A stretch of 64,000 nt of DNA from the NCBI GenBank assembly GCA_965644265.1, contig CBFFRO010000099.1:1-64000 (forward strand), read 5' to 3'. Positions 2,650 to 52,238 of the stretch are shown in pieces. The notes beneath the pieces are model-generated. The model did no database searches. It was given only the letters and a program-made list of their open reading frames with translations, and had not been told where the DNA came from. The position numbers and the translations under genes were made by a program. Source of the stretch: Glycera tridactyla (taxonomy: Eukaryota). Position 1 is the first letter of the stretch; every line of letters begins with the position of its first letter.

Positions 2650-4007
2650 TACATGTATATATCCTGTATGCAGACTTCAAGCGAGGGAGTCAATGACAGA
2701 CACCTGATTTGGCAAGAATGAATATTCGGCAGAATGTGATATGCCAGATCTGTGACAATCTTTCCATACCAATGCCTCTGCCTAGGGATAGAATTTTCAA
2801 TAGCCTTTCGTAGTGTTAGGAATCGGTACCAATTTTGGGAATTGATTAATCAGAATTTATTTCGATTGATTAATCAATTATAATTGATGTTTAGTCAAGT
2901 GTCAAAGAAGACTGATTTGTAGCATGGAGGATGGTGACTGACATGACACGAGAAGTGAGAAGGCATGAATTCATCTGTAAAAAGAGTTAAAAGATGCTGG
3001 AGAGTGAAAGATAGACTAATAAATCTTGAAAAATGATAACGAGATCCAGATTATTCTAGAAAAAATACATTTAATGATGAAATCTGTCCTGCTGAAAATG
3101 AAAGCCAAAAAATCGATTCTGACAAAGTAACATTGATTAGTAGAATCGAAACCAAATTCGATTGATTCAATCGATTTCTGAGCGAAACGTCGCAAGACTT
3201 GCCTTTCGTCAGTGGTCAGAATTTCCCTTACACATTTGAAATAAGTTGTGTAGAGGACTGAGTGTTGAATCCAATTATGTGCTGCCACACACCGCTGACT
3301 CTGTAGTGTATCAAGAGCTGAAATAAAACTAGGTCCCGCTCAACTAAAAAACGATGTTGTTCCATCCATCATACTCCAACTAATTGTGTTGTCAAGAGTT
3401 GTTACAGTATACGAAGTGTTGATGCCAAGAGGATGTTATCACTGGCGATGGCAGAGCAGCCGATGGAAATAAAAATGATGAAATGATGCCTCATATTCAG
3501 TATGGAAATAGGGATTGTTCATCATCATCATCATTAGTGCTATCATCATTATTGTTAACATTAGTTATCATTATGATTATAACAAGTATTTCTGCTTCAG
3601 TCATCCTCGTGAAGGGGGACAGCTTCCGTCGCAGAAATTGATCATTAGTATCATTACCTTTATTATCATTATTACAGGGATGTTATTGCTCCATGGATCT
3701 GAAGATTTCTGGGGTTTTTTGTCACGAGTGCAGCACTCCATGCATGGGGCGGAAAAGAGCAATATGTGCTGATTATTTTGGATTTTAGATCATGAAAATT
3801 TAACCAGAATTGATGGAGATAGAACACAGATTTTGTATGCAGTCATAGTAGCCATGAGTTGGCAGCTGGGGCTTTCCTGGTCAATGAAATCTTGGTGAAA
3901 AGCACCACGGGTCAGGTTTTCGGGGGTTTTGGTTGTGAACGAATTACATCCGTGCTATTACCATTGTAACAGCTGTAATTATAATTTTCATCATTATCAT
4001 CATTTTC

Positions 4008-4171
4008 GGGAATTTTCGGAAATCCGAAAATTGGGTGAAAAACGATAATTTCCGAAATTGCTATGATCTGCTTGGGAGTTTCAAAATAGATACTTTTGAT
4101 GATATGATGGCTAGTTTCAGAAAATATTCCTCTATTTCCGAAAATTCAGCATCATCCCATTGGCATCATTG
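4008..4171. mobile_element. Left-truncated copy of the CAGTGGTGTCAAT-TIR MITE family (hAT-like)
   Basis: Aligns by eye to 9085-9267 and 10032-10216 (AAATCCGAAAATTGGGTGAAAAA...ATCCCATTGGCATCATTG). Confidence 0.75.
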
Positions 4172-5201: not shown

Positions 5202-5938
5202 TATATTGATAATGGATACCACTGATGGGAGAAAGCTAGCATCAGAGAGGGAGGAAATCAGTTCTATATTATTTCTGATTTTTCAACAGGTATTTGGATT
5301 CACCAGATAGAGCCATCATCATATCATTATGTTCTGGAAGCATACATATCATCGACATGAACTGACTGTCCTGCATTTGTTCCAGTTCACATTCATCTGA
5401 TGTACATAAAAGACAGTCTTACATCTGTCACTCAAGTTTTGGAAATGAGAAGAAAAGTCACATATTTTGATAAGGATTGTTACGCCAAAGCAATATGAAT
5501 TGTGAAAGAGCAATAGCTTTTTTGATGAATATGGTTGTGCGCATTTTTATATGGTAATGAAGAGAACTATTGCAGTGACTGGTGGAGCAGAACTTTCGTG
5601 GATTTATATGAAGAAATAGTTTGTATGCGACCATCTAAAGAGAGTGACTGGTGTTTATACATTTCACAGGATTATATATGACAGTTTTTGATATATTGTG
5701 AGTTCCGAGGCGTTTTGATTCCTGTAATGCTTTTGATATTCCACGCTGTTGACTGTATCGGAGAGTGACTGGATAACTTTCACTGCGATTGAAGAACTTT
5801 TGCTCGGTTGAGGATCACGATTCAAGATGGCGGATTACCCTGTGGACGACGTGGAGAGTGTGACGTTGTTGGGGGTGGTGACGACGGTGACGTCAGGTAA
5901 TGTTACTAATACGACAGGTTTTGCTGGTGGTGTTGCAG

Positions 5939-6064
5939 ATGCACGTGTGGAGCATATCGCGCGGGCGGGGTGGTTCATCGGGATGATGTGCGCCATTCTC
6001 TTCCTCCTCCTCATCCTTCTCATCGTCTGTCTCATCAAACGCAATCGAGGAGGCAAATACCCAG
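5939..6064 (+). CDS. Nrg: L1CAM-family (neuroglian/NrCAM-like) transmembrane exon; 5' boundary uncertain (alternatives 5897, 5918)
   Basis: Encodes (D)[41 protein letters not shown], the GWFIG TM helix and KRxxGGKY juxtamembrane motif of L1 proteins; TACTAAT branch-like site at 5904-5910; CAG acceptor at 5936-5938; phase-1 donor CAG|GTAACG at 6064/6065. Confidence 0.93.
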
Positions 6065-7521: not shown

Positions 7522-7609
7522 TGTATGAGAAAGAGAAGCTACGAGCGCAGGATCCCAACTATCCTAACCGCGACGACGAAGAAGGCGGCTTCGGCGAATA
7601 CACGAGAAC
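7522..7609 (+). CDS. Nrg: L1CAM-family first cytoplasmic exon (88 nt, phase 1 to 2)
   Basis: TTTTTGCTATCAG acceptor and AC|GTAAGT donor; continues the TM exon in frame as VYEKEKLRAQDPNYPNRDDEEGGFGEYTR(T), matching the L1-family GGKYxV...FxEY pattern. Confidence 0.95.
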
Positions 7610-10216: not shown

Positions 10217-12243
10217 ATTGCAATACTAGACTGATACTGGGAATTTTTATGTTTATCATCATGTGGAATTGTATTTGTGTTACTCTGCATGATCATTATC
10301 GTAGGATATATGTTGTACCTTGCTATCCAAACTCGCACATTCACTTTGGCCCTAGACTCCTATGTTTGGATCAGGTGAAATGCGGTGCCCCACACCTCAG
10401 AAATGTGATTGCTCCACAGATCTGCAGATTTCTACATTTATTCGGGGAAATGTTACCTATGATAGAGTAGAGTGTTCATGCTATTGAATACTATGGTTTT
10501 AAGATCCTGAAGTTCTGATCGTAATCTGTCAAGTTGGAGCACAGCATATGCAGATGACTTGAGACATCTGCCATTTCTGTAGTCATACATTGTTCTTAGG
10601 CCATCATCTCTTGTGAAAATAGACTAGCCTGAAGGCCTGATGGAACAAAAATGTTTTATCAGTGCCAAAGCCATTCATCCAAATCACTTTGGATGAAATA
10701 TAGAAATCTTCCACACCTGGTAAATTGAAGGTTTTTCTCCAAAGGGCCTAAATAGCTTCCAGCGGATGAAATATTCCCTGTTTCAAAAACACTTAAATGG
10801 TTTTTTGATTATGTTCTACTTCAAAGAACAGGTGAATAATATTCAAGAAATCCAATGATTTCTGAAAATGTAATTCATACATTTCGATGATGTATCATGA
10901 GACATAGTTCTGTCTAATATTCAAGTGTTTTGGGCATTTCCAACCTTACAGCCATATATTCTTGCTTTTATCACATGGATTAGGAGAGAAATTGTCAAAA
11001 AGTAGTTGTCATCCAGTATCACATGCAATACTCAACACTCGATACTACACTGAAAATGTCACATCCATGTGTTAAAGACCCCAACCGTGAACCTTCAATG
11101 CTCATTGGGTCCATGTGGCCGTTCGTCTGGACATATGGGTTATGATTCAAAATGGTGGCCTACCTCGTAATAATCAAATGTTGAGAGGGTCAAAAAAATC
11201 TGGGCCAGTGGACCCATAGTAGAGGATATTGATGGGCCAAAAGGGCAAAAAGGGGGTCAATATAGCATGAGTCCCCTACCTGAGCGGTCGGAACAATGAT
11301 ATCACACGTGATATCACTTCACCCGCGATCCCAAGAGTGTGATATCATCGATCAGACCGTTCGGGGTGGAGATTCATGCATTCATGCCACACTCAAACTA
11401 CTGTCTTCCTTCCAAATTCTGGTTCTCAGTGTAAAGTGCCTTGACAATAAGCATCCGCCATGTTGGTTTACCTTCCATGCTCACTGGTACCCCATCTAGC
11501 TGCACATGAGTTGATATGATCGACAGAAGCTAGGTTACCAGTCGGCTGGTGAACAGCAAAAATAGTCCGGACAATACTTCCCGGTACGGGAGTATTTCAA
11601 GTGATAATACATACCACTTTAAAACATAGAAAACCACACATGTGTGGTATAATGGCCCGTCAATAATTAGAATGGCACTGATATGACGGAGAAACCCCAG
11701 AGTTGAGAAACTGGAAAGTTGAAATCTCAGGCCGTCTTGAATGTTTGTAGTAACAACTTTTCTTGTAGTGTTGTAGTTTTGTCGTCAGTGATTCATTTTT
11801 ATATCGCTTTCTTTCTCTTGTTTTCTTTCCAGGCCATCCAAAGTGTGAGTGTCCAGCACAATATATGTCTCGTCCTCCATTAAGACTGATGGCCAGCCCT
11901 ATTTTAATTTCTATTCTAATTGCCGTGTGAATCATAATCCGATCCTCCCCCGACCTCTTACAGCTTGTTTGCGGTGTCCTGGATTGCATGCGCATTGATA
12001 GCCATTAAACTGGGCCCAGTATTTGATAAGAGCTGCATTATGTGCACTTTTGATGTCGGTCAGGTTTCAGTTCTGGAACCTTTCACTGCATAATTCCATG
12101 TTTGCCAACTGCCAGTGGATTTAGACAAGCTGCTTCTGTCAAGCTCTTAATTGCATGCAGCTCAGAAGTCAAGTTAACAAGAGTTGTTCAGGGCAAAATT
12201 GGCAGGGAGCATTCATTGTGTGTTGGATTAGTCATACCATCGT

Positions 12244-12382
12244 ACCTGCTCCAGAGACCACCTGTTCATAAAGGCCACCCTGAGCTGTGACCGTGATAGT
12301 ATTTTTAACAGTAAATGGCCTCTTGATAGAGGCTACCTGCCTATAGAGGCCACTATAAAGGTCTGTATAGACAGGTTTGAAT
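12244..12382. mobile_element. Degenerate TA-target MITE
   Basis: ACCTGCTCCAGAGACCACCTG...ACAGGTTTGAATGTA; shares motifs with 2487-2649. Confidence 0.65.
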
Positions 12383-15300
12383 GTACATGTACAGAAATGC
12401 ATACAGAGGGGGCATTTATACATTTCATTTATTTCTGGAGCATACAGGGCTCTACACTAGGGCTTTTGTATTGGCACAGTCAGGTACCTGACCATTATTT
12501 AGGCTATTATCATATATACAAGAGGGCAGGTGAAAAGCACCATGTTTGCAAAAATGGGATATTAAGCCTGAAATACAGGAATTCTGATGTGGTCCCTTTT
12601 TGGGGAATTTTGCATTGGAAAGAGAGAAAGTAAAATCGGAAAATTGGGCCTGATCTAGTCCAATGTCATTGAATTAATGTGGATGCATGCAGTGAACGGT
12701 CCAGAATAGAGCTGAATACTGCGCATTTCACTAACAGATATTCAATAGAAGTCCTTCAACATATGAGGACATGCGGAAAACCTCATATCGGACTGCAGTT
12801 TATACTGTTTTTCATTGGAAATCCCCCCAGTCTGTTATTGCCGAGCAGTATCACATGGAAATTCACAACGTTCACCATTCTAATTAAGTTTTGTTACTAA
12901 TGAAATTGTTCTGTTTGTTTACCGTTCTGATGAAGAACAAATAGTTTTAGTGCAACTAAAGTGATGTTTGGTATCTCTTAACATTAATATTGTATCAAGT
13001 GTTGCGGCATGTGGTTGTTTTGAAATTACACGTCTCGTGTAATAATTACAAGAGTTTGCAACATGTTTTGATATCCAGCGTCCCTGCTACAAATTCCTCC
13101 ACACCAATATAACCTATTCCTCCTTCATGTTGAATATTTGGTATCCCTCTTAAAAATTCCATCTTTTTTTTTTTTTTTTGAACAGATTCGTGAGTCATTT
13201 TCTCAATAAGTACTTTGTATATCTCGCAACATATGATATCTAACGAGCTATGTGATATATTTATTTTTTCCAATGGCTAAATGCATAGCTTGATTTTTTT
13301 TTCTGGAAAATTTCCACTCAATGTCCACATAACATATTGTATTAAATTGCTGGGATTCATTGTTTTCGGCACTTTTTCATGTATATCATCAATATTTTGA
13401 AATATTTCGGATTCAGTTCCCTCATTGCAGGTGAAATTGCTTTCCGTTGCTGCATGATATCTTTCCGTTACTAATCGCATTGCATTTTTGATGTTACAGT
13501 TACTAATAGAACATTGATGAATTTCCGTTACCGCATCATTCCTGTCCCATATTTCTGAATCAGCTTGAGATTTTAGCGATGCCTTCAGGTCATGTGGCAT
13601 TCGGAAGAATAGCAAACGAAATTTCGTCAAATTTAAGGGTCAACATACCCACATTAAGGCTAATTTGCCCATTATAGTGTGATCAGCCACCTCCAGGAAA
13701 TGACTAATTGTCGGATATTCATCATTGTCTGCTTGTGAATTTGTCATTTTAATATGCATGATTGACACGTCCTCAGGTTATGTTACACCGTATGGGAAGT
13801 GGGGGTTCATATATACATTAATTCGTATCACAGCTACTACAGTTTTCACACAACTTGTATATTTTTTTGCAGCTGCAGCTTGATGAAGTTTAATTTTCAT
13901 AACTTTTTTCCTTGGAGAAATGTCTCTCCCATACTGGCCTTTCCCGGGTGGACAACTGTTTATTTCATGCCCTAGAGTCGGAAGGCCTCATTTACAGAGA
14001 TCTAGATAGTATCCACAGAACACACGGTCAGAATGATGTCCTCCTTTTCGGCCCACAATGTCCTTTTATCAGATTGGGAGACTCCTCTTTTTGTCCATAT
14101 TTGCCATCGGATGATTAGATGGCTCATCATACTGAGATTTGACCCATGATGCTTCTAGCTTGTGGGCCACAATGGCCCAAAATTCTTTGAGAAAATCTGA
14201 AGGTAGGAGAAATAATACTGATAGTGTAGAGGAACCATCACACTTTGCAGTGTGCATCCTTTTTCAAGTGAAGAGTACCAGAAGTTCATCTGGACTAGCT
14301 CTCAGTTTCTCTCTCATCTGTCTTGAGGTTTGATCACCTTTTCCTCACATCTGTTCTGTCTCTCAGGATTTCGACCTTAATTATTTGGCAAAAACACATA
14401 GGCGTAGAAAGATATTTTTGACCATATCAGTACCTTATTTATAGTATTGATACATCTCAGTTGGCAGTTTCTTTCATCTTGTGTTCAGGGTGTGTGAGAG
14501 TGATGCTTGAGGGGACAGAGCATTCAGCTTTTATGATCCCAGAATGCATTGCATATAATCCTATGGATTGATACAGACAGTTGAACTCTGGAAACGAATC
14601 CCTGATCCATCAACCACATTTTTCATCATTGAGAATTTCATTAAAGTTTGCCTCTTTCTAACTTCCTATGTGTTCTTTAAATTAATCAAGATATTCAGAA
14701 AAACAATCTTGGAAACAAAATTTCAGTTGAATTTGTCCATGTATTTGCTGTTATTTGGCTGTTCTTGGTGTATTTCGATGTGCTTCTATATGTGAGACTC
14801 AAACCATCGTCCTCAAACTCATTTTTCATTTGTTTCAACTAACATATATCGGTGTTTTCAGTTCATAGCCTGTAAAGCATTTGACTAATACTCAACCATT
14901 TGGCAGTATTGTATCTTGTACTGACCTGATTTTAGCCAAATATCTGCCCGAAAACTGTCGGCATTTTATAGGTCGATTTGTTCGACAGCATGTAAATTGA
15001 TGATTCCAAATTTCAACTGTATGCCCAGTACATCTGGTCCTCTTCACAATTGGCTCTGTGGAATGCTTAAGAATTATAGCAGTGCCCTTGATAATTGCTC
15101 TGAAAGCCGGAACTCAGATGATATCTGGTGAAAGAAGTGCAGTTCAGATCGGCCAATCCTTGTAAAGAGGATAATGCAATACTGAACTCATCTAACCCTG
15201 GATCACTTACATGGAATGTCTGAATGAAAATCCAGATGATAATTTTTTCACCTTCCATCATAGTTTTCCACAGCCACAGAATGAAGAATTATGTCTTTGG

Positions 15301-15785
15301 CATTATCAAAAAGTGTAACGGAACTATTCCTCTCAGCTTTATTGCTTCTGTCTTCCATTAGATTCTCTTCACTTTTCAAAGCCTATAAATGGCTGGGGAT
15401 TTTCCTTCTTCCAATTTTTATCTGCTTCTCACAAAGCTGAATTTGATAATTTACAAATCCGGTTTCCACTATTTCCCACCCTTGATCTGTCACCCTTGAG
15501 AGTATTTTTGCTCCATATTCATCTTCTTTATTTTTCAGCAGTGGAGAGTTTGGTCTCCTTGAGACGTAAAGTTTTGAGCCGTCACTTTGCTGGCCCACAG
15601 CTTCCCCGACTAATTTTATCTTCAGTTTACAGTCGTTCAACTAAACTTTTGAAATTGCCTCGCCCCGCGCAGTTGGGGGCCGATCAGTTCAGGTGGCAGA
15701 TGCTGGCTATCTTTCACGTGTGTGTGTGTTTTGTGCGGTGTGCTACCTGTAGTTTTGACTTTGTGTATGCCTGCTTTTGCTTCAG

Positions 15786-15839
15786 CGAAGACCCAGCCGA
15801 TCAAATGTGGGCGGGTAGATCTAGACCTAACTCATCCGG
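15786..15839 (+). CDS. Candidate 54-nt cassette exon (T)EDPADQMWAGRSRPNSS(G)
   Basis: TGCCTGCTTTTGCTTCAG acceptor and CGG|GTAGGC donor; symmetric phase 2-2, open frame. Confidence 0.5.
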
Positions 15840-18800
15840 GTAGGCACAATTCTCATTTTGTCAGTTTTCAATCCAATTTTTTTTTTACCGACTTATCTTA
15901 GTCCTAGCGCTAAGAGTCTATTTTTGTCGGGGAGGTCAACCCATCACGAAGATCATCAACTTAAAATGGGCTCTTATTCCTCATATTTTTTTTCTTCCAA
16001 CTTATATTTATTATATTTTTATATGAGCACCAATGTGTTGATAGTACATGTGTAGAAATGGTTGACTCTATGACAGTGTCCTCTCTTTAGTGTCTCATCG
16101 CTCAATTAGAAAAAAAAAAATTTATGCTATGTCACTTCTCCTCAATCTTGGGGGTCTTGACTTCCTTGATGGCTTCTGTTTGTTTTTGTTCTCGTTTTTC
16201 TCTGTCCTCAGTTGATGCCTTTCTTACATTGAGCAAACTTTCCTTTTTGTTTCTTTCACTTTTCTCCGATCTTTTTCTCCATACCCTATGTCTTGTATTC
16301 TGTCTTCGGACAAACCTAGAGATAGACTATTTTCACTCGCTCTCTGAATATCTTCATTTTGCGTTTCTCTACCATCAGTTTTGGAGCTGTTAAGGGTCAT
16401 TCCTACTCGATTTCATCCATCAACAGTACAATATTAGCTCGAGTTTTTTTTATTATTTTGAAATATGATAGTGATATAACCCAAGACCTGAGTTTGATTC
16501 ACATTTTTATTTAGTGATAATCATCTTCTTCAGAATCCGTTTTGTGGGGTTTTTCTTCAATTAAACCATTTCTGAAAGTGGCGCGTCATTCCATTTTTAG
16601 CACTGCTGGTATAAAATGACCACTCAATAAATCAATGGCCACAAGTATGCATCCACCAAATGTGCAATCACTCAAGTAAGATTAAAAACTTACAGTAGTA
16701 TTTTGAAAGAGTAGATATTCCATCTAGAAGTTGCCCTACTTTCAGACACAAGCTGTGTTGTTGGGGATGGGTCAAGCACCTCTGCAACTGACCAACATGT
16801 CTGGCTGATGTGGTTTGCCGCATGATCGCCCATGCGATAACCACTAGGTGTCAGTTTGATGAAGGGTTGGTTGAACCATCAGCAGTGTCGATGATTTTGT
16901 CTGAGGGAATTTCAGCACGCTTTTCAGTTGTAACGGTTGCCAACGTTTTGTTATGTTCAGTAACGGAATACAGGTGCCCATTCCTTTGTGTCACATTTAC
17001 GATAAAGAATACTTGATAGGGGATTCAGCCAATGTTTCTTTGTTAGTCGAACTGAACCGTCTGCAGTTCTAGCCTGAATGACAGCTAATCGCCATTGAAA
17101 GATCTACAAATGGTCCCCACTCTTTGTTTCTTGTCACTTATGTTTTGATCTGACTGGCTTCAGGCAATGTTTCAAACCCTCCATATTAGAAGACTTACAG
17201 TAATATTGTTGGTTTTTGTGGGAGCAGTGTTGAACCTGCATTCAGAATTTAGTCCCTCAATACAGGCATTGGTTGGTCATTGATATGTTATCATATCCAT
17301 CGGAAGTATTATAACTACAGATCTTAAAGTTTTGTTGAGGCTCCATTGAGACCCTTCTCTTCGGTTTGATTCTCAGTTATTGTAGACACTGTCAGACAAT
17401 CAAAAGTAGCATGCACATATTTTTTACTCAGATTCATATTGAACTCACATTCCAAGCCATGGTCCACAGTTGATAGAATTGCGCTGTTCATGTTGTCTTG
17501 AGCAAAGTTGTGTGTGCTTTTTACTATGTTGATCATCATGTGACACCCCTGTAAGTTTCAGGCACAGTTGGAAATTTCTCTTTTTCCCAATTTTATGTTT
17601 TGGAAATGACGAAGGACTGTATCATTTGGTTACATCAACTTTAGATAGTGATTGAGGAAAACAAGTATTGGAAGCTCTCAGCTTACTTCGAATGCTTGTA
17701 TCGTTTATTTCACATATTCTGACAAATTTTTGTGGTATTGATATGAGTAATATCCCCATAGCGTGACATTGCTCTTGAGTGGAACCACTGGATGTGAAGA
17801 TGAAGCTATCGAACTTGTCTTATTCATGTGTTGCGTTGACGCAAGATGATTTCGGAATGTAGCATCAGGCGTAAATTTCTTGGTCTGTGGTTCCACTCTG
17901 AAATACAGAACACCTTTAGGATATATCAAACAACTCTGCACGCTGGTGTATTGAGGCTAGAATGGTTCTAAAACATGTCAGAAAACCCCTGTGATCAATT
18001 CCGTTGGTTTTGTCCACAATCGCTGCGTCTTCCCAATCCAGTGGCGATGAAGTTGCGATGATGCAGAGTTTGTCCGAATGAGACGGGTGTCACATGGTGA
18101 AAATGTATTGAAATGTTACTGTATTTGTATGTTGTTGTATTTTTGAGATCAAGTGGTGATCTGCTGGCACTGTACTTCATTGGAGAGTGTAACTTCAACG
18201 TATCAAAATCTGAATTTGGGGCATTATTGTTGGGTCCTAGACGCTACTGGTTTGAACCTCCCCGAACATTTTGAGAAATCATAATTATGTTGGATACTAC
18301 TTCATTTTGCACTTGTCAAGTGAATTAACGACATCTTTCATCTCATGAGACTGTTAGGCCGCAAACATACCAGAATTTGGATCGGAATTCCGATACTTAT
18401 CAGAAATCTGATGAAAGGGGACACACCTTGTCTGTTTTCGAATCAGTATCTCCCAGTCTGAGCTCACATCTGACACACATGTCTGACTCAGTTGTGCCTA
18501 TTGATCAGCGTCCATACCATTGCTCTCGCTTTTACTAAATCGGATGCAGATTTGGTTACGAATTCTGATCCAGACTGGTGCATTCTGGATTGGCTCAAAC
18601 GTAGGAGCAGAGATGCCAACTGCTACAATTTTGGAGTAGCATTTACTCTGTTCAGACCTGAATTCTTGCATTTTACGAGTGATGCTACTCTGAAGAGTCA
18701 GGAATTTTCTTATTATTTCATCGCAAATACTGGCACTGCTAGCCTTTGAAATTGGCACTGCCGCTAGTTTTGTCCGTCAGAGGTCGGCATCTATGTATGA

Positions 18801-19158
18801 GTACAATTCTTTTCTGATGGCTGTCAGAATCCTGATCTGAATTTTGACAGCAAAAAACTGTGAGGTGTTATTGCACCATCAATCTGATGATAAAGATGAG
18901 TCTTGTTGTCAAAGATACTCTGTAGATTGAACATATTTTGGAACTCTCCATGTTCCGTTGCCTCGGGAGATGTAGGGCGTGCTGCAGATTGGCCACCTGG
19001 TCCGATGTTATTGTTTATGTGGTCGTTGCATGAGCTTGTCTAGATGTCACTTATTAGATGAGACATAACTTACTTTGTGTGCATGTTGTGTTTTTGTTTT
19101 ATGTTTGCCTTTGATTGCCGCTGCTCTTCTTGACTGTTGTGCACCGTGAATTCATCAG

Positions 19159-19173
19159 TTATATGCCTCTATT
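19159..19173 (+). CDS. Candidate 15-nt microexon encoding YMPL
   Basis: ~94-nt AG-free T/TG-rich zone with several TGC; CAG acceptor; GTAAGT donor; phase 2-2 in frame; TGCATG at 19371 and 19379. Confidence 0.75.
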
Positions 19174-19781
19174 GTAAGTACATTCTCGGCCTTTGTTATA
19201 ACGCAAGCACATGCTAATTTAGAATTGGGTAGATTTTCCTATACCCAATATAGAATTGGGTGGATGTTTTGTATACCCAAACTACTCTTATGATGTATCC
19301 CGTCTGATACTGCCATTTTTCGAGCCGATTGCTCCGTCCCCTTTTGCTACACCTTTGATTGTATGATGAATGCATGTATGCATGGATAAGCATTTAACCC
19401 AGGGCACTCCTCGTTTGAGTGTGCGCTAGCATGGTGTAATTCCCACGGAAATATACACTGATTCATTGTGGACTAAAATTTTGCCTTGTGTATTTTGATG
19501 TTGTTGGTAGATATGATCATAATTCATGTTACATCCTGTATGAAATCAACACTAATTTTCCATAATTGACTCATGAAATGACTACATTATCCAGGTTTTC
19601 GATTAAAGCATGAGTGTCATTACTCACACAGACTGCATTTTCATTTTTTCATTTTTACGATACAATTGACAATTTGATTTGAGGAGAACAATTTCCAGCA
19701 CTAGTTCAACTTCTTATACATTTGCTTGAGAGAGGGGTTTCTATTTAGGTGAAGATACAACAACTTAGAACTTAGAACATA

Positions 19782-19926
19782 NNNNNNNNNNNNNNNNNNN
19801 NNNNNNNNNNNNNNNNNNNNNNNNNNNNNNNNNNNNNNNNNNNNNNNNNNNNNNNNNNNNNNNNNNNNNNNNNNNNNNNNNNNNNNNNNNNNNNNNNNNN
19901 NNNNNNNNNNNNNNNNNNNNNNNNNN
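19782..19926. other. Assembly gap (145 N)
   Basis: Run of N followed by GT-rich sequence. Confidence 1.
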
Positions 19927-21491
19927 GTGTGTTCATTTGTACATGCAAGTGTCTGCGCATGTATGCTTGTGTATGCATGAGTGTTCCTGTGTCTGGCTGA
20001 ATGTGGGCCTTGCTGTCGTACCGTACCAAAGTGTCCATCATAACCATCCCATCCGTGTATTGTGCATTCCCGAATATACAGTCGTTGAAATTTCAGTTCT
20101 TATCATCAGTTGCCCACATATTTTTTTTTCTCAAAAAACGCACATCATTTTGACTCCTCATCGGGTTCTCCCTAGATTGGTAGATTTCCGCTCATAGACT
20201 TTCGATAAAAATCCCGTAGTGTTTCCAGCAGCTATCGTTACCACTTCTGTTGGATTAACATCACCCTCTAATATTCTCACTCCCTGCCATTTTTCTATCA
20301 AATTTTGTCAGATTCCATGTTATAGTTATGGAGTATTGCCCATTTTTTTCCCCATTATACACCACGGAACAATACAAAGTGTTTTACATTTTTGTGACCT
20401 CTCATAGATATGCGATGGGCAAGACTACAGGAAGAGATCCGAATTGATCTGCGATTCATAACGGACTATTCCATCAAGCAATATGAGGGGAGGGAGGGGT
20501 CAGGGTTGGAACAATTCTAACCCCCTACCCTATATCCTGAATTATTTGGCACCCCTGATTCAGAATTTGCATTCACCGACCGAGCCAACTGTTGATATCT
20601 TTGCATTACAGTGGTCAATGATCTCCTTCCCCAATTCTGAATGCGATGGATTGACATCAATCTCCTAGCCCCGAATCCTGATTTTTGCAGCACCCTCAGA
20701 TTAAATCTGTTGGTAACTCCCCAGATTTCGGATCGGCTGTCAACTGCCACCCGCACATTTTCAAATAGAATAGCCCTGGCATAGATCACCATTCACCGAT
20801 TCCATCTACCTGTGCGAGCTGCTCGCTAATTTCAAAACCATGAATGTAAACAACCAATCATGTCACAAACATGATTATAAATATAGATCAAATATTTATG
20901 GTCCACAATTTGAAGTGAAATACGAAGCAAATCCATTCAAGAATGCCTTGCTTCAGTTTCCATTCTAGTTATTTCATCCCTTAACTACCTCAAAGCCTAA
21001 GTTTACGATCCTGGCTTCATACAACATTTTTTTGTCTCCGGACAATTGGTCTGGAAATCATGAACACTTTTTGTTGGATATGAAGTGGCTGACCAATCCC
21101 CAAAGAGCACTTTTTGAGATGCTATGCTGTGAAAGATTCATTGGACGATAATGCACAGTGGATAAGCCAATGGCCAAGTCCCTACCTGCTTGCTGCAGAC
21201 TGAAAAGTCATCCCGCAGCAAAAGTTCTTCTGGATGGCTAGAGCTGGAGCTATTGAAGTCGCCTTTCTGTGGTGTTTAGATGTTGCAGACTAGCTTGTTC
21301 AGCTTCATATCCCACAGAAAAAGAAGCCCAGGATAGTATACTCAGGCATTAAATTTAGCGTCATATCATTTTTTTTGCGCTGAATATGCTGCTGTTGAAT
21401 GAGATAACGCGCTGCTCTGCTGATTTTGTTTGCATTGTGTTTTTGTGTCACCATAATTTTGTTGACATTTTTTGTACATCTTTGTTTTTAG

Positions 21492-21512
21492 GCCCTACAT
21501 GGAACTAAAGAG
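21492..21512 (+). CDS. Candidate 21-nt microexon encoding PYMELK(S)
   Basis: ~86-nt AG-free T-rich zone; TTTTTAG acceptor; GAG|GTAAAA donor; phase 2-2 in frame. Confidence 0.75.
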
Positions 21513-21567
21513 GTAAAACTCATGCTCCTGTTTTTGATTGAACTAGCAGTTGTCCCTACCTTCCTGC

Positions 21568-21625
21568 TGGTGGTGGTGGCAGCTCTGGTGGAGGTGGTGG
21601 TGGTGGTGTTAGTGATGGTGGTGGT
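21568..21625. repeat. (GGT)n-rich tract
   Basis: Directly visible. Confidence 0.9.
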
Positions 21626-22227
21626 TTGCTTTTATTTCCTCCTGTTTGCTTGACCTTAGTTTGACTACCAATTTTGTAGAGGTTGCTGTTGTTTTGTACC
21701 AAGACTCCTACTAATTCAAACCAATCAAAATTGAGCCTGTCACTCAAGACGGCTGTGAACAGGCCCAAGACGATGAGAGGGTTTTCTGTTTTACACATCT
21801 AGATATTGGATTCACACATCTAGATATGGGATCTAGAAATCAAATTCCTATTCCAAGTGGACAGTTTTCAGTCAGACTGGAGCCAAGATGTTTTTGAATT
21901 TCATTCTATCTTCCATCAGTACCAGTGACAAGCAAGGAGTCACAATCGTACTTTTTCCTGTGGCCTGAATATAATACCAAGGTTGGAGATCATTTGCAGC
22001 CAATCTATGGTGGCAAAGTTTCAAGCATTTATGAAAACTCTCGATTATTCTGCTTTGAGGTTATGCTGTCATGTCTGCTCCTCTATAAAGTGTCAAACCC
22101 ATTTGAAATGTTACTATTATTCTCTCGCTTATCTGGCATGATATCGAGATAAATCAAGTAATGGAAACTCAGGATCTATGTATTAGAACCTGAGAGTCAG
22201 AGGTTGCCTTCTGATTTCCCAATCTGA

Positions 22228-22460
22228 CCCCCCCCCCCCCCCCCCCCCCGTGTCTATCTCTCTGACTGTCTGTCTGCCTGTCTCTCTCTCCCTCCCTCCC
22301 TCCCTCCCTCCCTCTTCCCTGCTCACATCTCCCCTCCATATCCCTCTATCCATCCATCCCCTCTCTCCCTCTATCCATCCATCCACCCCTCCCTCCCTCT
22401 CTCTACCCCTCTCTCCTTCATCCTCCTCCTGTTCTCTCATCCTACTGATTCCTTCCTTCC
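22228..22460. repeat. Poly-C followed by CT/CCCT/CCAT low-complexity pyrimidine tract
   Basis: Directly visible. Confidence 0.95.
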
Positions 22461-23519
22461 CGCTCACTCTCAATCTGTCTTCATTGATTGATTGATCAAT
22501 CAATGAGTGTTGGATCAGGTTCTGGCATGATCAAGATCATGAGTTGCTATAATTGATCTATCCCCATGAGAGAGAGTGGGCCCGCTGATAAGGCTTCTGG
22601 TATCTGGCAGACTTCTGCATGACCTGAGCATCAATGGCTTCACTAGTAGGCAAACCTTGACTTTCTTGCACATTGCATGTGTCTTGGCAAGTCATATTTA
22701 CCATATTTCTCTACAGTCGAAGATAACAGTAGTATAGGTTCGAGAATTCTTCCGGGCTCACCTATAGTGCCTCATGGAATGTGCTTTCAGTGTGTTTCGG
22801 GGTTCATTTCACGAGTTGAGCTTCTCTTGAAATTGGAATTCCTGATGTGAGATGTTCAGGATCTGTGGCAGAAGAGTCACAACCATTCACAGCAGCCTCG
22901 GAAAATATGGAATTTTTATTCATGCTCATGCTACCTGGTTATGACAATCAACACATCCTGTCATTATCATGGTCTCATACTATGAGTGAAATCACATTTT
23001 GACTCAGATATTGATTCCAGATTTGACTGTACGTTTTGATGTAGGCTGCAATGGTCACACCTTTGAATTGCTGAAACCCTTTGCAGCTGTCTCGAAGACA
23101 TAGAATTTTCATTTATGCTCATGCTACTTGATTGTCATGATGGACCGCGAATGTCAACATCATGGCATCATCTGCTGCAATGAGATTGCATTTTGAATCA
23201 GAACATCTGAGAAAAGTAAAGATATTGACTTGAATATGAATAGATGGAATAAAACGATATTCATATCAAATTTGACTTACCATTTTGTTTGCCCCCTTTC
23301 CTCCCCTATTTTTGATGTGTTTTTGGAGAGTGACCAGTTACCACTGATCTGCCACCACCTCTCTAGATAGGGTTGATGACTTCCTCCACTAGATGACTCT
23401 GCAGAAATGACTGACGTGTCCTAGGTCAAGGTCAAAGCTGGCAGTCACATGATTCCACGAGCTTCGAGATCTGGTGAAATATGAACACTTCTCTGCTCAT
23501 CAGCTGAAGTGATGAAACA

Positions 23520-27596: not shown

Positions 27597-27804
27597 GGCC
27601 TATTTGACTGGACAGTTTCCGTTGAGTGGGCATTGCAGGACTTAACGGTTGTAGCCCAGCCGGATGGGTTTTGTTTAACGAGTTCAACGTAGTCAAATTA
27701 CCGTTGAGATTCGTATGCAATGAAAAAGTGTTGGGTGCCACCTGAATACGAAAAGTGCTCAACAGCCTGGCCGTACTCAACGAAACTGACCAGTCTAATA
27801 GGCC
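27597..27804. mobile_element. MITE with ~30-bp TIR and TA TSD at the left edge of the tandem array
   Basis: GGCCTATTTGACTGGACAGTTTCCGTTGAGT versus reverse complement of right end GGCCTATTAGACTGGTCAGTTTCGTTGAGT; TA on both sides. Confidence 0.9.
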
Positions 27805-28214
27805 TATATACACTGTCCTCTGCTGTTGATATCGAAAGAATGCCCATTTCTTCATGAGCTGTACAACATGGACCCGATGAGATAGCTGAGGAATAGCTCT
27901 TGCGACAATGATGTTTGGAACAGCATCCAGACATGATGATGACGTCAAATTGCTTTTCATGTTTAGAGAGCCAACCAATTAGTTGCTACTTTTGCTTGTC
28001 TTTCTCATGATTATTTTTCATGATCGTGGTCTCTGCCCGATAGAACATGGATTGAATAAGAGACCGAATAGTGATCGCCATGTGAAGATTTGATGACTCA
28101 AGAGGAGCTGGCCTTCAAGTTGCAGGTCCTTTCTCATGCAGCGGTGCTTTTTGGGTAGTATGACCTTAGAAATGCTTTATATTCATGTGTGTGGTGTTTC
28201 TGATGTGTTTTCAG

Positions 28215-28437
28215 TGATGAGCCTGACTTCAAGAAGAGTCAAGGGTCCGTGGAGAGTGGTGGCCTGGGATCAATGGGCGGAAGCGACGAAGACAGTATGG
28301 CCGATTACGACACGGAGGTGGACCCGGGTAAGTTCAACGAGGACGGGTCCTTTATTGGCCAGTACGGCGGCAAGACGAAGAAAGAAGAGAAAGAGCCCGA
28401 TGCCGCCTCCCCGTCTGCACTCTCCACTTTTGTATAA
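28215..28437 (+). CDS. Nrg: L1CAM-family terminal coding exon, copy 1
   Basis: GTGTTTTCAG acceptor; phase 2 matches exon 7522-7609; encodes (T)DEPDFKKSQGSVESGGLGSMGGSDEDSMADYDTEVDPGKFNEDGSFIGQYGGKTKKEEKEPDAASPSALSTFV*, with DS(M)ADY and FNEDGSFIGQY L1 signatures and T-F-V PDZ ligand. Confidence 0.97.
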
Positions 28438-31400
28438 TACACCATCCACTCTGTGGCCCCCCTTGATATTATCGAGTGTCCGAAGCAGATGCTGTTTTCG
28501 TGGTTGAGTCTACATCAATGTATCTGCTTGCGTGGATGTGTGCCAGTGTGACAAAATGCTTGCAACCTGCTCCAGTGACATGTGCCAATCTAGACACAGA
28601 AACAAGTGCAATATGGAGGTCCGTTTCATTTCTGGAAGCTGCAGTCTTCATGGTCATTCGTGGTGGTTCAGAGGTCGACAAGCACCATTATTTTCCGTAG
28701 GAATCGAGAGATTGGAAGTGCCGGTTCATCAGATGGCTTCGAGATAATCGCTAGTGTTCCTTCGTTCATTGACCGTGAAAATATTTCAGGCATTTGTGAT
28801 AATGTAACAATGTCAGGTCATCTTGGTCAGAAGGTGCTAGCCAGTTTCGAATCGACAGGGATTGAGCAGCTCTCAGGGGACCTCCTGGACCTTCAAATCC
28901 ATCATGTGGGTTAAACCCCGAAATGTACTTGCCAGGACTGAATCTTCAAATCATTGAGCGAAAGAAAACATCACAGGAATCTGCAATGAACACTTAACCG
29001 GTGGCATGTGCTGGATTTGCTTCGTGCTGTTTTGACTCGTATTCAATTTCGTGTTTGTGTGCGTAACTTTAAGACGTCCTGGTCTGACAGAAGCTGGAGC
29101 AGTCATAGTCGGGGGGCAAGAGGTCAGCCCGTCTCATACGCAAACCAAAGGAAGCAGACATTACCAGATCTGAGATAGGAAAATGACTGATATTGGTCGA
29201 TGTTGGACCACGTAAAAATTTCTGCTATTCAAGGTGGACTTGTTAGGAGCATTGATGCTGTGTAGAAACGGCCGAGAGCAAAGCAAGTGACAATGCACCT
29301 TTAGTTGGCCTAAGAGTGAATTCTTAGCCATCGCTTGTTTTCTGCAAATCCTGGTGGTGAATGATGCTTCTTGTCAAGCATGCAGTGGTCGGTAGATGAT
29401 TGCATGCCTGCCAAGATACTCCAGGCATTGTCACCATGATTGGAAAAGAATTGATGTCCGGGAATTGACACTTTGGCCCTTTAGTTTTGATCTGACGTTT
29501 GCTTCATTGTGCATCTAGCATGGTTTCTGTTGATGAGTTATAGTATTTTGTTTGTGCTGAATAGGATCCCGAGTCATGGTATCAGCCACTCGTGTAACAG
29601 TGGCTGATTGTGCATGTATGGATGGTGGTGAATACTCATTCTTGGACCGTAGCTCAAGAAATTTCATGATTCGTTCCTATCCGATCTGTTAATTTTATGA
29701 TGAGGTATTCCCGAATGGGTGTACTTATATGTGTATACTTGACCACAAAATCCTCTCTGTTTGAGCAAGTAAATTCTTGACTTGCAAGCAATCTCTAGTT
29801 TCTCTTGAGATATGCTTTGATTATCTACTTCACTCCAGAACAGTGATGTTTGCATATTGTTTATCTGGAAGACAGTAAGGATCCTTGATGATATCTCTTT
29901 TTGATTTGACATGCAATCAAAACAACTATATTTAGATATACATTTGTCACTGGCATCTTGGTGTTCTATTCAGCACTCACGGAAAATATACTCACTATCA
30001 TATTTTTTGAAATAAAGTTGCCTTATATTTTTTGAAACTGTGCTTCAACTATGCATGTGGTACACACTTTAGTCAGATTTTGTTCCTGTATTAGCTTTAT
30101 GAAAGCGCCATCTAATGGTGGGACTGAGGAGAGATTAATTATGCTGCTTGGTCTAGAGATGGCGCTAGGTGTAGTCATGAGTCCATTATTTTCACTGGTC
30201 CCCCTATGTCTGTTTTCATGCCATGTGTGTATTTCACTGCCAAAACCCATCATCATACGTAGAACTGTACATAGACATTGTGAAGGTGTGTATGCAAGTG
30301 TGAGCTTGAGCGTGAGGGTATGCGTGCAATCGTGTGTGCTTGAGCATGTGTGTGAGTGATAGATGGGTGCTTGCATAATCACACTTACAGTACAGTGGCA
30401 ATATGGGCCATAGCTGAATCTTGCTTTTTAAACGTGCTATAAGATCACACCATTTGTTATTGTCACTTAGGAATAACCTCTATGGAATCGTGTAAGGTTG
30501 TAAGCAGCATAGTATCTCTAGAAGAGGGAGCATATCAGCTCGGTATGATGAAAGAAAATGCATCAAATCTGCATCAAGTTGACAGAATCAAAACCAAAGT
30601 TTACTCACTGCACAATCTGAGGGAACATCATAAGTAATAGTGGCAGATTTTGATGGATAAAGGCAAATGACTCTCGCACTGTTTTCTCTGTCTATGTCAA
30701 AAGTGGATTTCTCTTTTTGAATGATGAGTGAGATTGGAGAAACCAACCTGATGGAGAGAGAAGTGATAGTTTTGCAATGGGCCAGTTCAGGTGTGAAATC
30801 AACTGATCCACAAAGTGTATTAAAGAGAAATACTGGTCACAAATATGGGACTGGAATGTCAATCGCTGAAATGTGTATATTCGAACGATTACAGTGTTCA
30901 TAGCAGGACAAGACAGTCGATGAATAATATGGAATGTGCAGTTGTCCATGTATTATGTGAGTGTTGTGGGATATACAAGGGTATTGTTACTTGTTCTAAA
31001 TAATTCAAGTTGCAGTGAAATGTGTCTGCTTGCATCGCTGTCTTTTGATGACCTCGTGACATTCTCTGTCATGAGAGAACATAAGAGTTGACAACAGTTT
31101 CATATAACTTGCCATTGAAATTTATGACCAATTGCTAGCTGTATGTGGATTGGCGTGTACAAGTAAATGTCTGGTTAGGCGAAACAATTATCCTGATTAT
31201 TTATTAATGTTTTTTTGTTTCTCCTAATGATATTAAAATCGTAATTCAGTTCACTGTTGCATCACCATGGAAAGATGACATTTCAAAAGATTGATGATGA
31301 TGAATAGATGAACAGATAAATGCATATAGAAATAGATAAATCGAAGGACAGTTTGATGAAGATAGTCAGAAATTGTTTGTTTGGGATTTTTTTGTATCAT

Positions 31401-51856: not shown

Positions 51857-52238
51857 GACCTCCTGGACCTTCAAATCCATCATGTGGGTTAAACCCCGAA
51901 ATGTACTTGCCAGGACTGAATCTTCAAATCATTGAGCGAAAGAAAACATCACAGGAATCTGCAATGAACACTTAACCGGTGGCATGTGCTGGATTTGCTT
52001 CGTGCTGTTTTGACTCGTATTCAATTTCGTGTTTGTGTGCGTAACTTTAAGACGTAACTTTAAGACGAAATTGAATACGAGTCAAAACAGCACGAAGCAA
52101 ATCCAGCACATGCCACCGGTTAAGTGTTCATTGCAGATTCCTGTGATGTTTTCTTTCGCTCAATGATTTGAAGATTCAGTCCTGGCAAGTACATTTCGGG
52201 GTTTAACCCACATGATGGATTTGAAGGTCCAGGAGGTC
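51857..52238. repeat. 174-bp inverted repeat (arms 51857-52030 and 52065-52238, 34-nt spacer)
   Basis: Right arm is the reverse complement of the left arm with no mismatch found by eye; absent from units 1 and 2. Confidence 0.97.

Follow-up and report, generated by a model that had tools for sequence, protein, structure and literature searches.

A 15-nt candidate YMPL exon beside an RNA-supported PYMELK microexon in the cytoplasmic-tail intron of a Glycera tridactyla L1CAM-family gene

Introduction

Splicing controls an endocytic switch in L1, and this switch may be ancient or may have arisen twice. The RSLE mini-exon of vertebrates has 12 nt, is exon 27 of L1CAM (28 in some numbering) and is also present in NrCAM and neurofascin. 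In vertebrate L1CAM, RSLE is included only in neurons. The YRSL motif binds AP-2 and is the signal that governs L1 endocytosis in growth cones (PMC2956685). Microexons that depend on the eMIC have a long AG exclusion zone and UGC motifs near the 3' splice site. Very few neural microexons occupy equivalent positions in vertebrates and invertebrates: only four are shared in this sense by the eMIC programmes of fly and mouse, and these were mostly judged convergent (PMC8797185).

In this study, the window is the whole stretch of 64,000 nt analysed from the annelid Glycera tridactyla (GenBank assembly GCA_965644265.1, contig CBFFRO010000099.1, positions 1 to 64,000). A preliminary description of its letters had proposed that positions 19159 to 19173 are a 15-nt microexon that adds a YMPL (YxxL) motif at the position of RSLE. 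We examined the gene, the splice signals, the RNA and the related loci that bear on this proposal.

Results

The gene and its cytoplasmic-tail intron

The window carries, on the plus strand, the 3' end of an annelid-type gene of the L1CAM/neuroglian family. The closest named proteins are from the annelids Lamellibrachia satsuma (containing ..GGFGEYTRTDEPEYKKSQGS..) and Capitella teleta. Three coding exons frame the region of interest.

5827 to 6064, plus strand: transmembrane/juxtamembrane exon, ..KRNRGGKYP, donor G/GTAACG; 5827 is the start of the open frame.

7522 to 7609, plus strand: FGEY exon, (V)YEKEKLRAQDPNYPNRDDEEGGFGEYTR + AC, phase-2 end, donor GTAAGT.

28215 to 28437, plus strand: last coding exon, T/DEPDF...NEDGSFIGQY...PSALSTFV-stop, with a sharp start of RNA coverage; the first (copy 1) of three in tandem.

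The FGEY exon ends ...GAA TAC ACG AGA AC/GTAAGT at 7609 (..GGFGEYTR + AC), and the last exon opens with T/GAT GAG at 28215. The last exon contains the ankyrin-binding motif FIGQY and has a C-terminus of PDZ type. The intron that leads from the FGEY exon to this FIGQY/STFV exon is 20.6 kb long and in phase 2. Read through an AG/T GAC acceptor, the last-exon ORFs P0080 and P0085 of vertebrates give ..C-S-DNEEK, and the vertebrate full-length protein P0082 reads FGEY-RSLE-SDNEEK. On this comparison, the window intron is homologous in position and phase to the vertebrate RSLE intron. The preliminary description had placed the 15-nt stretch in a phase-2 intron between the FGEY exon and the T/DE last exon of an L1CAM-family gene, and this was confirmed. 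Its equation of that intron with the RSLE intron also held, the AG/T GAT GAG of the window matching the vertebrate acceptor.

The last exon and ~11.4-11.7 kb of downstream sequence are present in three tandem copies (window 27791-64000). The last-exon copies are at 28216, 39628 and 51194, and their protein sequences share 97-100% identity. The region from 58 to 64 kb contains a sub-repeat of 2676 bp, and only copy 3 has an inverted copy of 177 nt, at 52062-52238. The RNA contigs show several 3' UTR variants that match copy 2, among them 29140 G>A, which all four runs have; one explanation is that copy 2 is expressed, the other that the copies are allelic or were duplicated in the assembly. The window also contains two runs of N, at 1483-1639 (157 bases) and at 19782-19926 (145 bases), the second ~600 nt downstream of the 15-nt stretch.

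Splice signals of the 15-nt candidate

The candidate, TTATATGCCTCTATT, lies between an AG at 19157-19158 and a GTAAGT donor at 19174-19179.

19062 to 19156, plus strand: AG-free zone upstream of the candidate, with a T/G-rich tract, five TGC, a TTGAC branch-point-like site and a TGCATG at 19080.

19159 to 19173, plus strand: 15-nt candidate cassette exon, T-YMPL followed by F or L, between AG and GTAAGT; absent from the main mRNA contig in each of four runs.

19371 to 19384, plus strand: two TGCATG (Rbfox-type hexamers), ~200 nt downstream of the candidate.

From the preceding AG, at 19061, 94 nt are free of AG, a length reached by only 11 of the intron's 1070 AGs (1%). The five TGC within the 100 nt upstream place the candidate in the top 3.6% of intron AGs, and the TTGAC site lies ~27 nt before its AG. 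The downstream TGCATG hexamers at 19371 and 19379 are at +198 and +206 from the exon, and two more are found upstream at 19027 and 19080 (-132 and -79). The splice features given in the preliminary description, namely the 94-nt zone, the TGC motifs, the GTAAGT donor and the TGCATG pair ~200 nt downstream, were all found as claimed. Enrichment of TGCATG was considered as evidence for the candidate and dropped: the window has 95 copies against 79 +/- 9 in shuffles, which is no enrichment, and only the local cluster at the candidate (four in 353 nt) is notable.

The 20.6-kb intron contains 673 AG..GT pairs of 3-51 nt that are free of stops and compatible in phase, and these were placed in a blind ranking by donor match and AG-free zone. 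The candidate was the first of the 673 in-frame pairs. The second, 11833-11844, is a real exon by RNA, so the ranking has some predictive value.

The acceptor of the candidate is its weak side. The pyrimidine share in the 20 nt before the AG is only 60%, versus 95% for the RNA-supported 12-nt exon at 11833-11844. The polypyrimidine tract is displaced and weak beside the AG, and the final 20 nt are purine-rich. This weak tract supports the view that the stretch is a silent pseudo-exon, never or negligibly spliced, which would be either a decayed copy of the PYMEL exon described below or an AG..GTAAGT pair that reads YMPL by chance. The site was also picked for its splice features, and these are therefore partly a selection effect. 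We regard a silent pseudo-exon as a real possibility that we lean against, although it is not far behind the reading favoured in the Discussion.

Inclusion of the candidate would keep the reading frame, since donor and acceptor are both in phase 2, with no stop in any exon combination. The resulting peptide would be T-YMPL-F, or T..V-YMPL-L if joined to the neighbouring microexons. In the conceptual peptide, YMPL lies ~45 residues past the KRNRGGKYP juxtamembrane stretch, a position and sequence that fit a Yxx-phi signal. In length (3-27 nt), frame preservation and a long AG exclusion zone with UGC, the candidate agrees with microexons of the eMIC type.

A small palindromic unit (TTGGGTA..TACCCAA) is present twice in tandem at 19220-19285, 45-110 nt past the candidate donor, with a modest predicted fold (-21 kcal/mol, z = -2.1). 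An Rfam scan of 17000-23000 matched no family.

RNA contigs join a 12-nt and a 21-nt microexon across the candidate

A run search gave eight runs from two studies with 90-96% of the sampled words of the last exon and 3' UTR. Logan contigs of four runs (two studies) were placed on 27600-29900. In all four, the contigs cover 28213 onward and leave the preceding intron uncovered, so they behave as RNA. Upstream of the last exon, the contigs of all four runs carry the same 30 letters, which consist of 11 of the 12 bases of one microexon followed by a second microexon. Each of the two exon strings is unique in the window.

11833 to 11844, plus strand: 12-nt microexon, AG/GCCATCCAAAGT/GTGAGT, T-PSK-V; in the RNA contigs of all four runs.

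21492 to 21512, plus strand: 21-nt microexon, G CCC TAC ATG GAA CTA AAG AG, PYMELK, AG/T giving Ser, donor GTAAAA; RNA-supported and conserved in annelids.

The main transcript consists of the FGEY exon, the 12-nt exon, the 21-nt exon and the last exon, and it reads ..GEYTR-T-PSK-V-PYMELK-S-DEPDF... The RNA junction from 11844 to 21492 passes over 19159-19173 in four runs of two studies. Inclusion of the candidate was not seen in the main contigs of the four runs, and skipping is the majority form. Skipping in all four RNA assemblies favours a silent pseudo-exon, but the contigs are blind to minority isoforms. Logan contigs omit minority variants, so a main contig that skips the exon is no sign that inclusion is absent; inclusion below about half is compatible with the contigs. 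The candidate is a well-framed, splice-competent-looking cassette exon that the predominant mRNA skips.

Other searches were made for the two tail forms. A 60-aa tail including YMPL returned no candidates among proteins of 33-105 aa. A 102-aa tail of the observed isoform returned only the last-exon ORFs of relatives, at no more than 80% identity, and none from this species. As only relatives matched, transcripts of this organism are missing from the protein collection within this range of sizes. Metagenome scans were blank for the inclusion junction (degenerate, with both downstream exons) and equally blank for the positive-control junction of the 12-nt, 21-nt and last exons, so the blank for the inclusion junction is uninformative.

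The 12-nt exon has the 95% pyrimidine acceptor mentioned above and TGCATG at +141 and +308. No clear counterpart of this PSKV exon was seen in Lamellibrachia or Capitella. Another candidate exon, at 15786, is likewise skipped by the 11844-to-21492 junction. Short RNA contigs also match 27739-27806, deeper than the gene, and a diverged copy of the neighbouring sequence forms their loose end. This match is probably a dispersed repeat expressed from elsewhere and no exon of the L1CAM-type gene.

The 21-nt PYMELK exon is conserved in annelids

The 21-nt exon, in context AG/GCCCTACATGGAACTAAAGAG/GTAAAA, lies 2.3 kb downstream of the candidate. Its architecture is like that of the candidate, with an AG-free zone of 86 nt and four TGC. 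It ends in AG, so that a Ser is recreated before the acidic run of the last exon. Long (GGT)n-type repeats follow the exon, at ~21569-21627 in the window and at ~3174-4114 in Lamellibrachia.

Counterparts were found in other annelids. In Lamellibrachia (locus L007, 3070-3090), the exon reads G CCC TAC AAG GAA TTG CCG AG/GTAAAA and encodes PYKELP. In Capitella (locus L014, 9290-9313), it has 24 nt and encodes PYMELAQ; the Capitella gene model ELT99433 lacks this exon. A metagenomic relative (L015, ~3349) encodes PYMELK. The transcripts P0254-P0257 of one relative read ..GEYTRT-PRMELKY-SEEPD.., and a skipped form, P0143, is in the same 90% cluster. Transcripts P0180 and P0253 of a relative read ..GEYTRT-PYMPLDSTPPK-SDQPEY... 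A Yxx-phi motif is encoded by this exon in the window, Capitella, Lamellibrachia, L015 and the P0180/P0253 relative, and one relative has Arg in place of Tyr. Because it is present in Lamellibrachia, Capitella, L015 and the transcripts of relatives, the exon is old within annelids, and forms with and without it coexist in at least one relative.

These data revise the proposal made for the 15-nt stretch. A YxxL microexon does exist in the intron corresponding to that of RSLE; it is the 21-nt exon, and not the 15-nt candidate, that supplies YxxL at the RSLE position. The statement that the candidate encodes a YMPL with its own Tyr was correct, and the YxxL exon that is RNA-supported and conserved in annelids is again the 21-nt neighbour.

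Could the candidate still be the main neural YxxL switch exon, with high inclusion in neurons and the functional role of RSLE? It lies in the right intron and phase, and has an eMIC-like architecture (PMC8797185) and flanking TGCATG. It also encodes YMPL. Neurons are, however, where an L1-type gene should mostly be expressed, and the contig that dominates in four runs lacks the candidate and contains the 21-nt PYMELK exon instead. The 21-nt exon is moreover the one conserved across annelids and alternatively included in a relative. Because the 21-nt exon fills that role, we consider it unlikely that the candidate is the main switch.

Chance, duplication or a sister exon

A motif test was applied to 66 stop-free candidates of the form AG-(3..30 nt)-GTRAGT, taken from both strands, all phases and the whole window. 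Only one of the 66, the 15-nt stretch, encodes Y[MK][EP]L, where 0.002 were expected; the test was defined post hoc, after the orthologous exons had been seen. All plus-strand frames of the 64 kb together contain just two YM[EP]L, one in the 21-nt exon and one in the candidate. A coding match to a conserved motif with so low an expectation argues against a silent pseudo-exon.

No counterpart of the candidate was found by nucleotide and motif search in the introns of Capitella (1.17 kb), Lamellibrachia (7.5 kb) and two metagenomic relatives (L015 and L011). Contigs of some closer relatives (76-80% identity in the last exon) reach at most 2.7 kb upstream and contained no microexon there. Absence from every other annelid locus examined is again what a silent pseudo-exon would predict. 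In an AG-anchored comparison, the flanks of the candidate ranked 42 of 1045 in similarity to the flanks of the 21-nt exon, which is not significant and also fits a pseudo-exon. A decayed copy that has lost its flank similarity would, however, be unlikely to retain an open frame between an AG and a perfect GTAAGT, preceded by 94 nt free of AG. The best local match within the intron is a T/G-rich element of 24-29 nt upstream of both the candidate and the 21-nt exon, and it is marginal. Origin of the candidate by tandem duplication of the 21-nt exon is thus unsupported, given the rank of 42/1045 and the marginal T/G-rich match.

A relative (L016) gave a further exon of this kind. Its Logan RNA contig (~1540-1600) has an extra 35-nt exon between the FGEY and PYMELK exons, which reads T-A-Y-D-P-L-A-A-Q-Y-stop. 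The nucleotide similarity of this exon to the candidate is not significant. It shows that the group has more Tyr-x-Pro-Leu exons at the same relative position, here one of 35 nt that truncates the tail. The L016 mRNA predicts either that truncated L1CAM tails lacking FIGQY are abundant or that the extra exon acts as a poison exon.

The L016 mRNA raises the question of whether the candidate, too, is an alternative C-terminus, its acceptor being used and its donor read through. Read-through would meet a stop at once (..T-YMPLL-stop, TTG TAA) and give a tail without FIGQY, and the abundant L016 mRNA has just such an extra exon, ending ..YDPLAAQY-stop before the PYMELK exon. The consensus GTAAGT of the candidate, in contrast, favours splicing over read-through, and we consider this use of the candidate very improbable.

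Taken together, the candidate is unlikely to be random sequence, because it is the only Y[MK][EP]L among the 66, because YM[EP]L occurs just twice in the window, because of its rank among the intron pairs, and because of the YDPL exon of L016.

Discussion

The most likely reading, which we put at about even odds, is that the 15-nt stretch is a sister exon to PY(M/K)EL, specific to the lineage, with use, if any, at a low level or in a subset of cells. Its Y[MK][EP]L belongs to the motif class of the conserved exon, P-Y-[M/K]-[E/P]-L, and the PYMPLD of the P0180 and P0253 transcripts counts in favour of this reading. By analogy with Srrm234 (eMIC-type) microexons, such an exon would be recognized through its consensus donor and the AG-free zone with UGC, and the downstream (U)GCAUG pair, of Rbfox type, may aid recognition. 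Inclusion would give the tail ..PSKV-YMPL-L-PYMELK-S.., in which an additional Yxx-phi precedes the existing one by two residues. If the candidate replaced the 21-nt exon, the tail would read ..PSKV-YMPL-F-DEPDF.., and the Ser before the acidic run would become Phe. By analogy with the YRSL of vertebrate L1, these Yxx-phi motifs might recruit AP-2 mu2 for clathrin endocytosis. Alternatively, YMPL might be a phosphotyrosine site.

A broader idea is that the FGEY-to-FIGQY intron hosts a family of related Tyr-motif microexons that neurons combine, with the 15-nt exon as a genuine, cell-type-specific member. We hold this idea to be doubtful. The members that it would include, equally tentatively, are PSK, YMPL and PYMELK in the window, and PYMPLD.., PRMELKY and the stop-bearing YDPL in relatives. 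If it is true, such a family would determine how many Yxx-phi endocytic or phosphotyrosine signals the tail has and in what context they stand. The candidate itself matters only if it is a second, regulated copy that allows combinatorial tuning of the tail, and this is for now a prediction.

The notable result is that an RNA-supported, annelid-wide microexon puts Y-x-x-L-x-S-D where vertebrate neurons put YRSL-E-S-D. Under the family idea, the Y-x-x-L-x-S-D switch would either date back to the bilaterian ancestor, and share its origin with RSLE, or have arisen convergently more than once at a hotspot intron. The annotated tails of amphioxus, hemichordates, molluscs and a nemertean have no Yxx-phi insert at the junction; such annotations often miss microexons. 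The sequences lean towards convergence at a hotspot intron over common descent with RSLE, because the annotated tails of intermediate lineages lack the insert, with the proviso that annotations miss microexons.

Octopus has a KKK insert at the same junction: the isoforms P0087/P0088 and P0015/P0089 of Octopus bimaculoides differ by KKK (..DSK-KKK-SDENG). In the nemertean Lineus longissimus, P0139 differs from P0258/P0259 in using one of two alternative, diverged last exons that both bear FIGQY.

The candidate can be compared with four known exon types. The 35-nt exon of L016 also lies between the FGEY and PYMELK exons and also has Tyr-x-Pro-Leu right after ..GEYTRT. Unlike the candidate, it shifts the frame, ends in a stop and truncates the tail. 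With eMIC (Srrm234/SRRM3/4) microexons, the candidate shares a length of at most 27 nt, symmetric phase and a host gene of neuronal function (PMC8797185). It differs from them in its polypyrimidine tract, which is displaced and weak near the AG.

The candidate shares with the annelid P-Y-(M/K)-E-L exon the intron and phase, a core tetrapeptide of the same class (YMEL, YKEL, YMPL), and a long AG-free zone with a UGC-rich T/G tract upstream. The annelid exon is RNA-supported and conserved, has 21-24 nt, starts with R-CCN (Pro before Tyr) and ends in AG. The candidate, in contrast, has 15 nt, no Pro, a stronger donor, a weaker acceptor and no RNA support.

With the vertebrate RSLE exon, the candidate shares its cytoplasmic-tail intron, phase 2 at either end, preservation of the frame and a length below 27 nt. 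The exon that follows starts in both cases with T/GA(Y), that is (S/T)-D-acidic, and the Yxx-phi lies ~45 residues past the membrane. The differences are also clear. RSLE takes its Tyr from the upstream exon (FGEY/RSLE), whereas the candidate brings its own. The upstream exon is here two codons longer (FGEYTR), and the candidate has no sequence similarity to RSLE. It ends in TT (Phe or Leu) and makes no Ser through AG, and the RNA contigs show no inclusion. The 21-nt neighbour fits the vertebrate spacing better: it gives Y-M-E-L-K-S-D where RSLE gives Y-R-S-L-E-S-D, and both exons join the next through ..AG/T.
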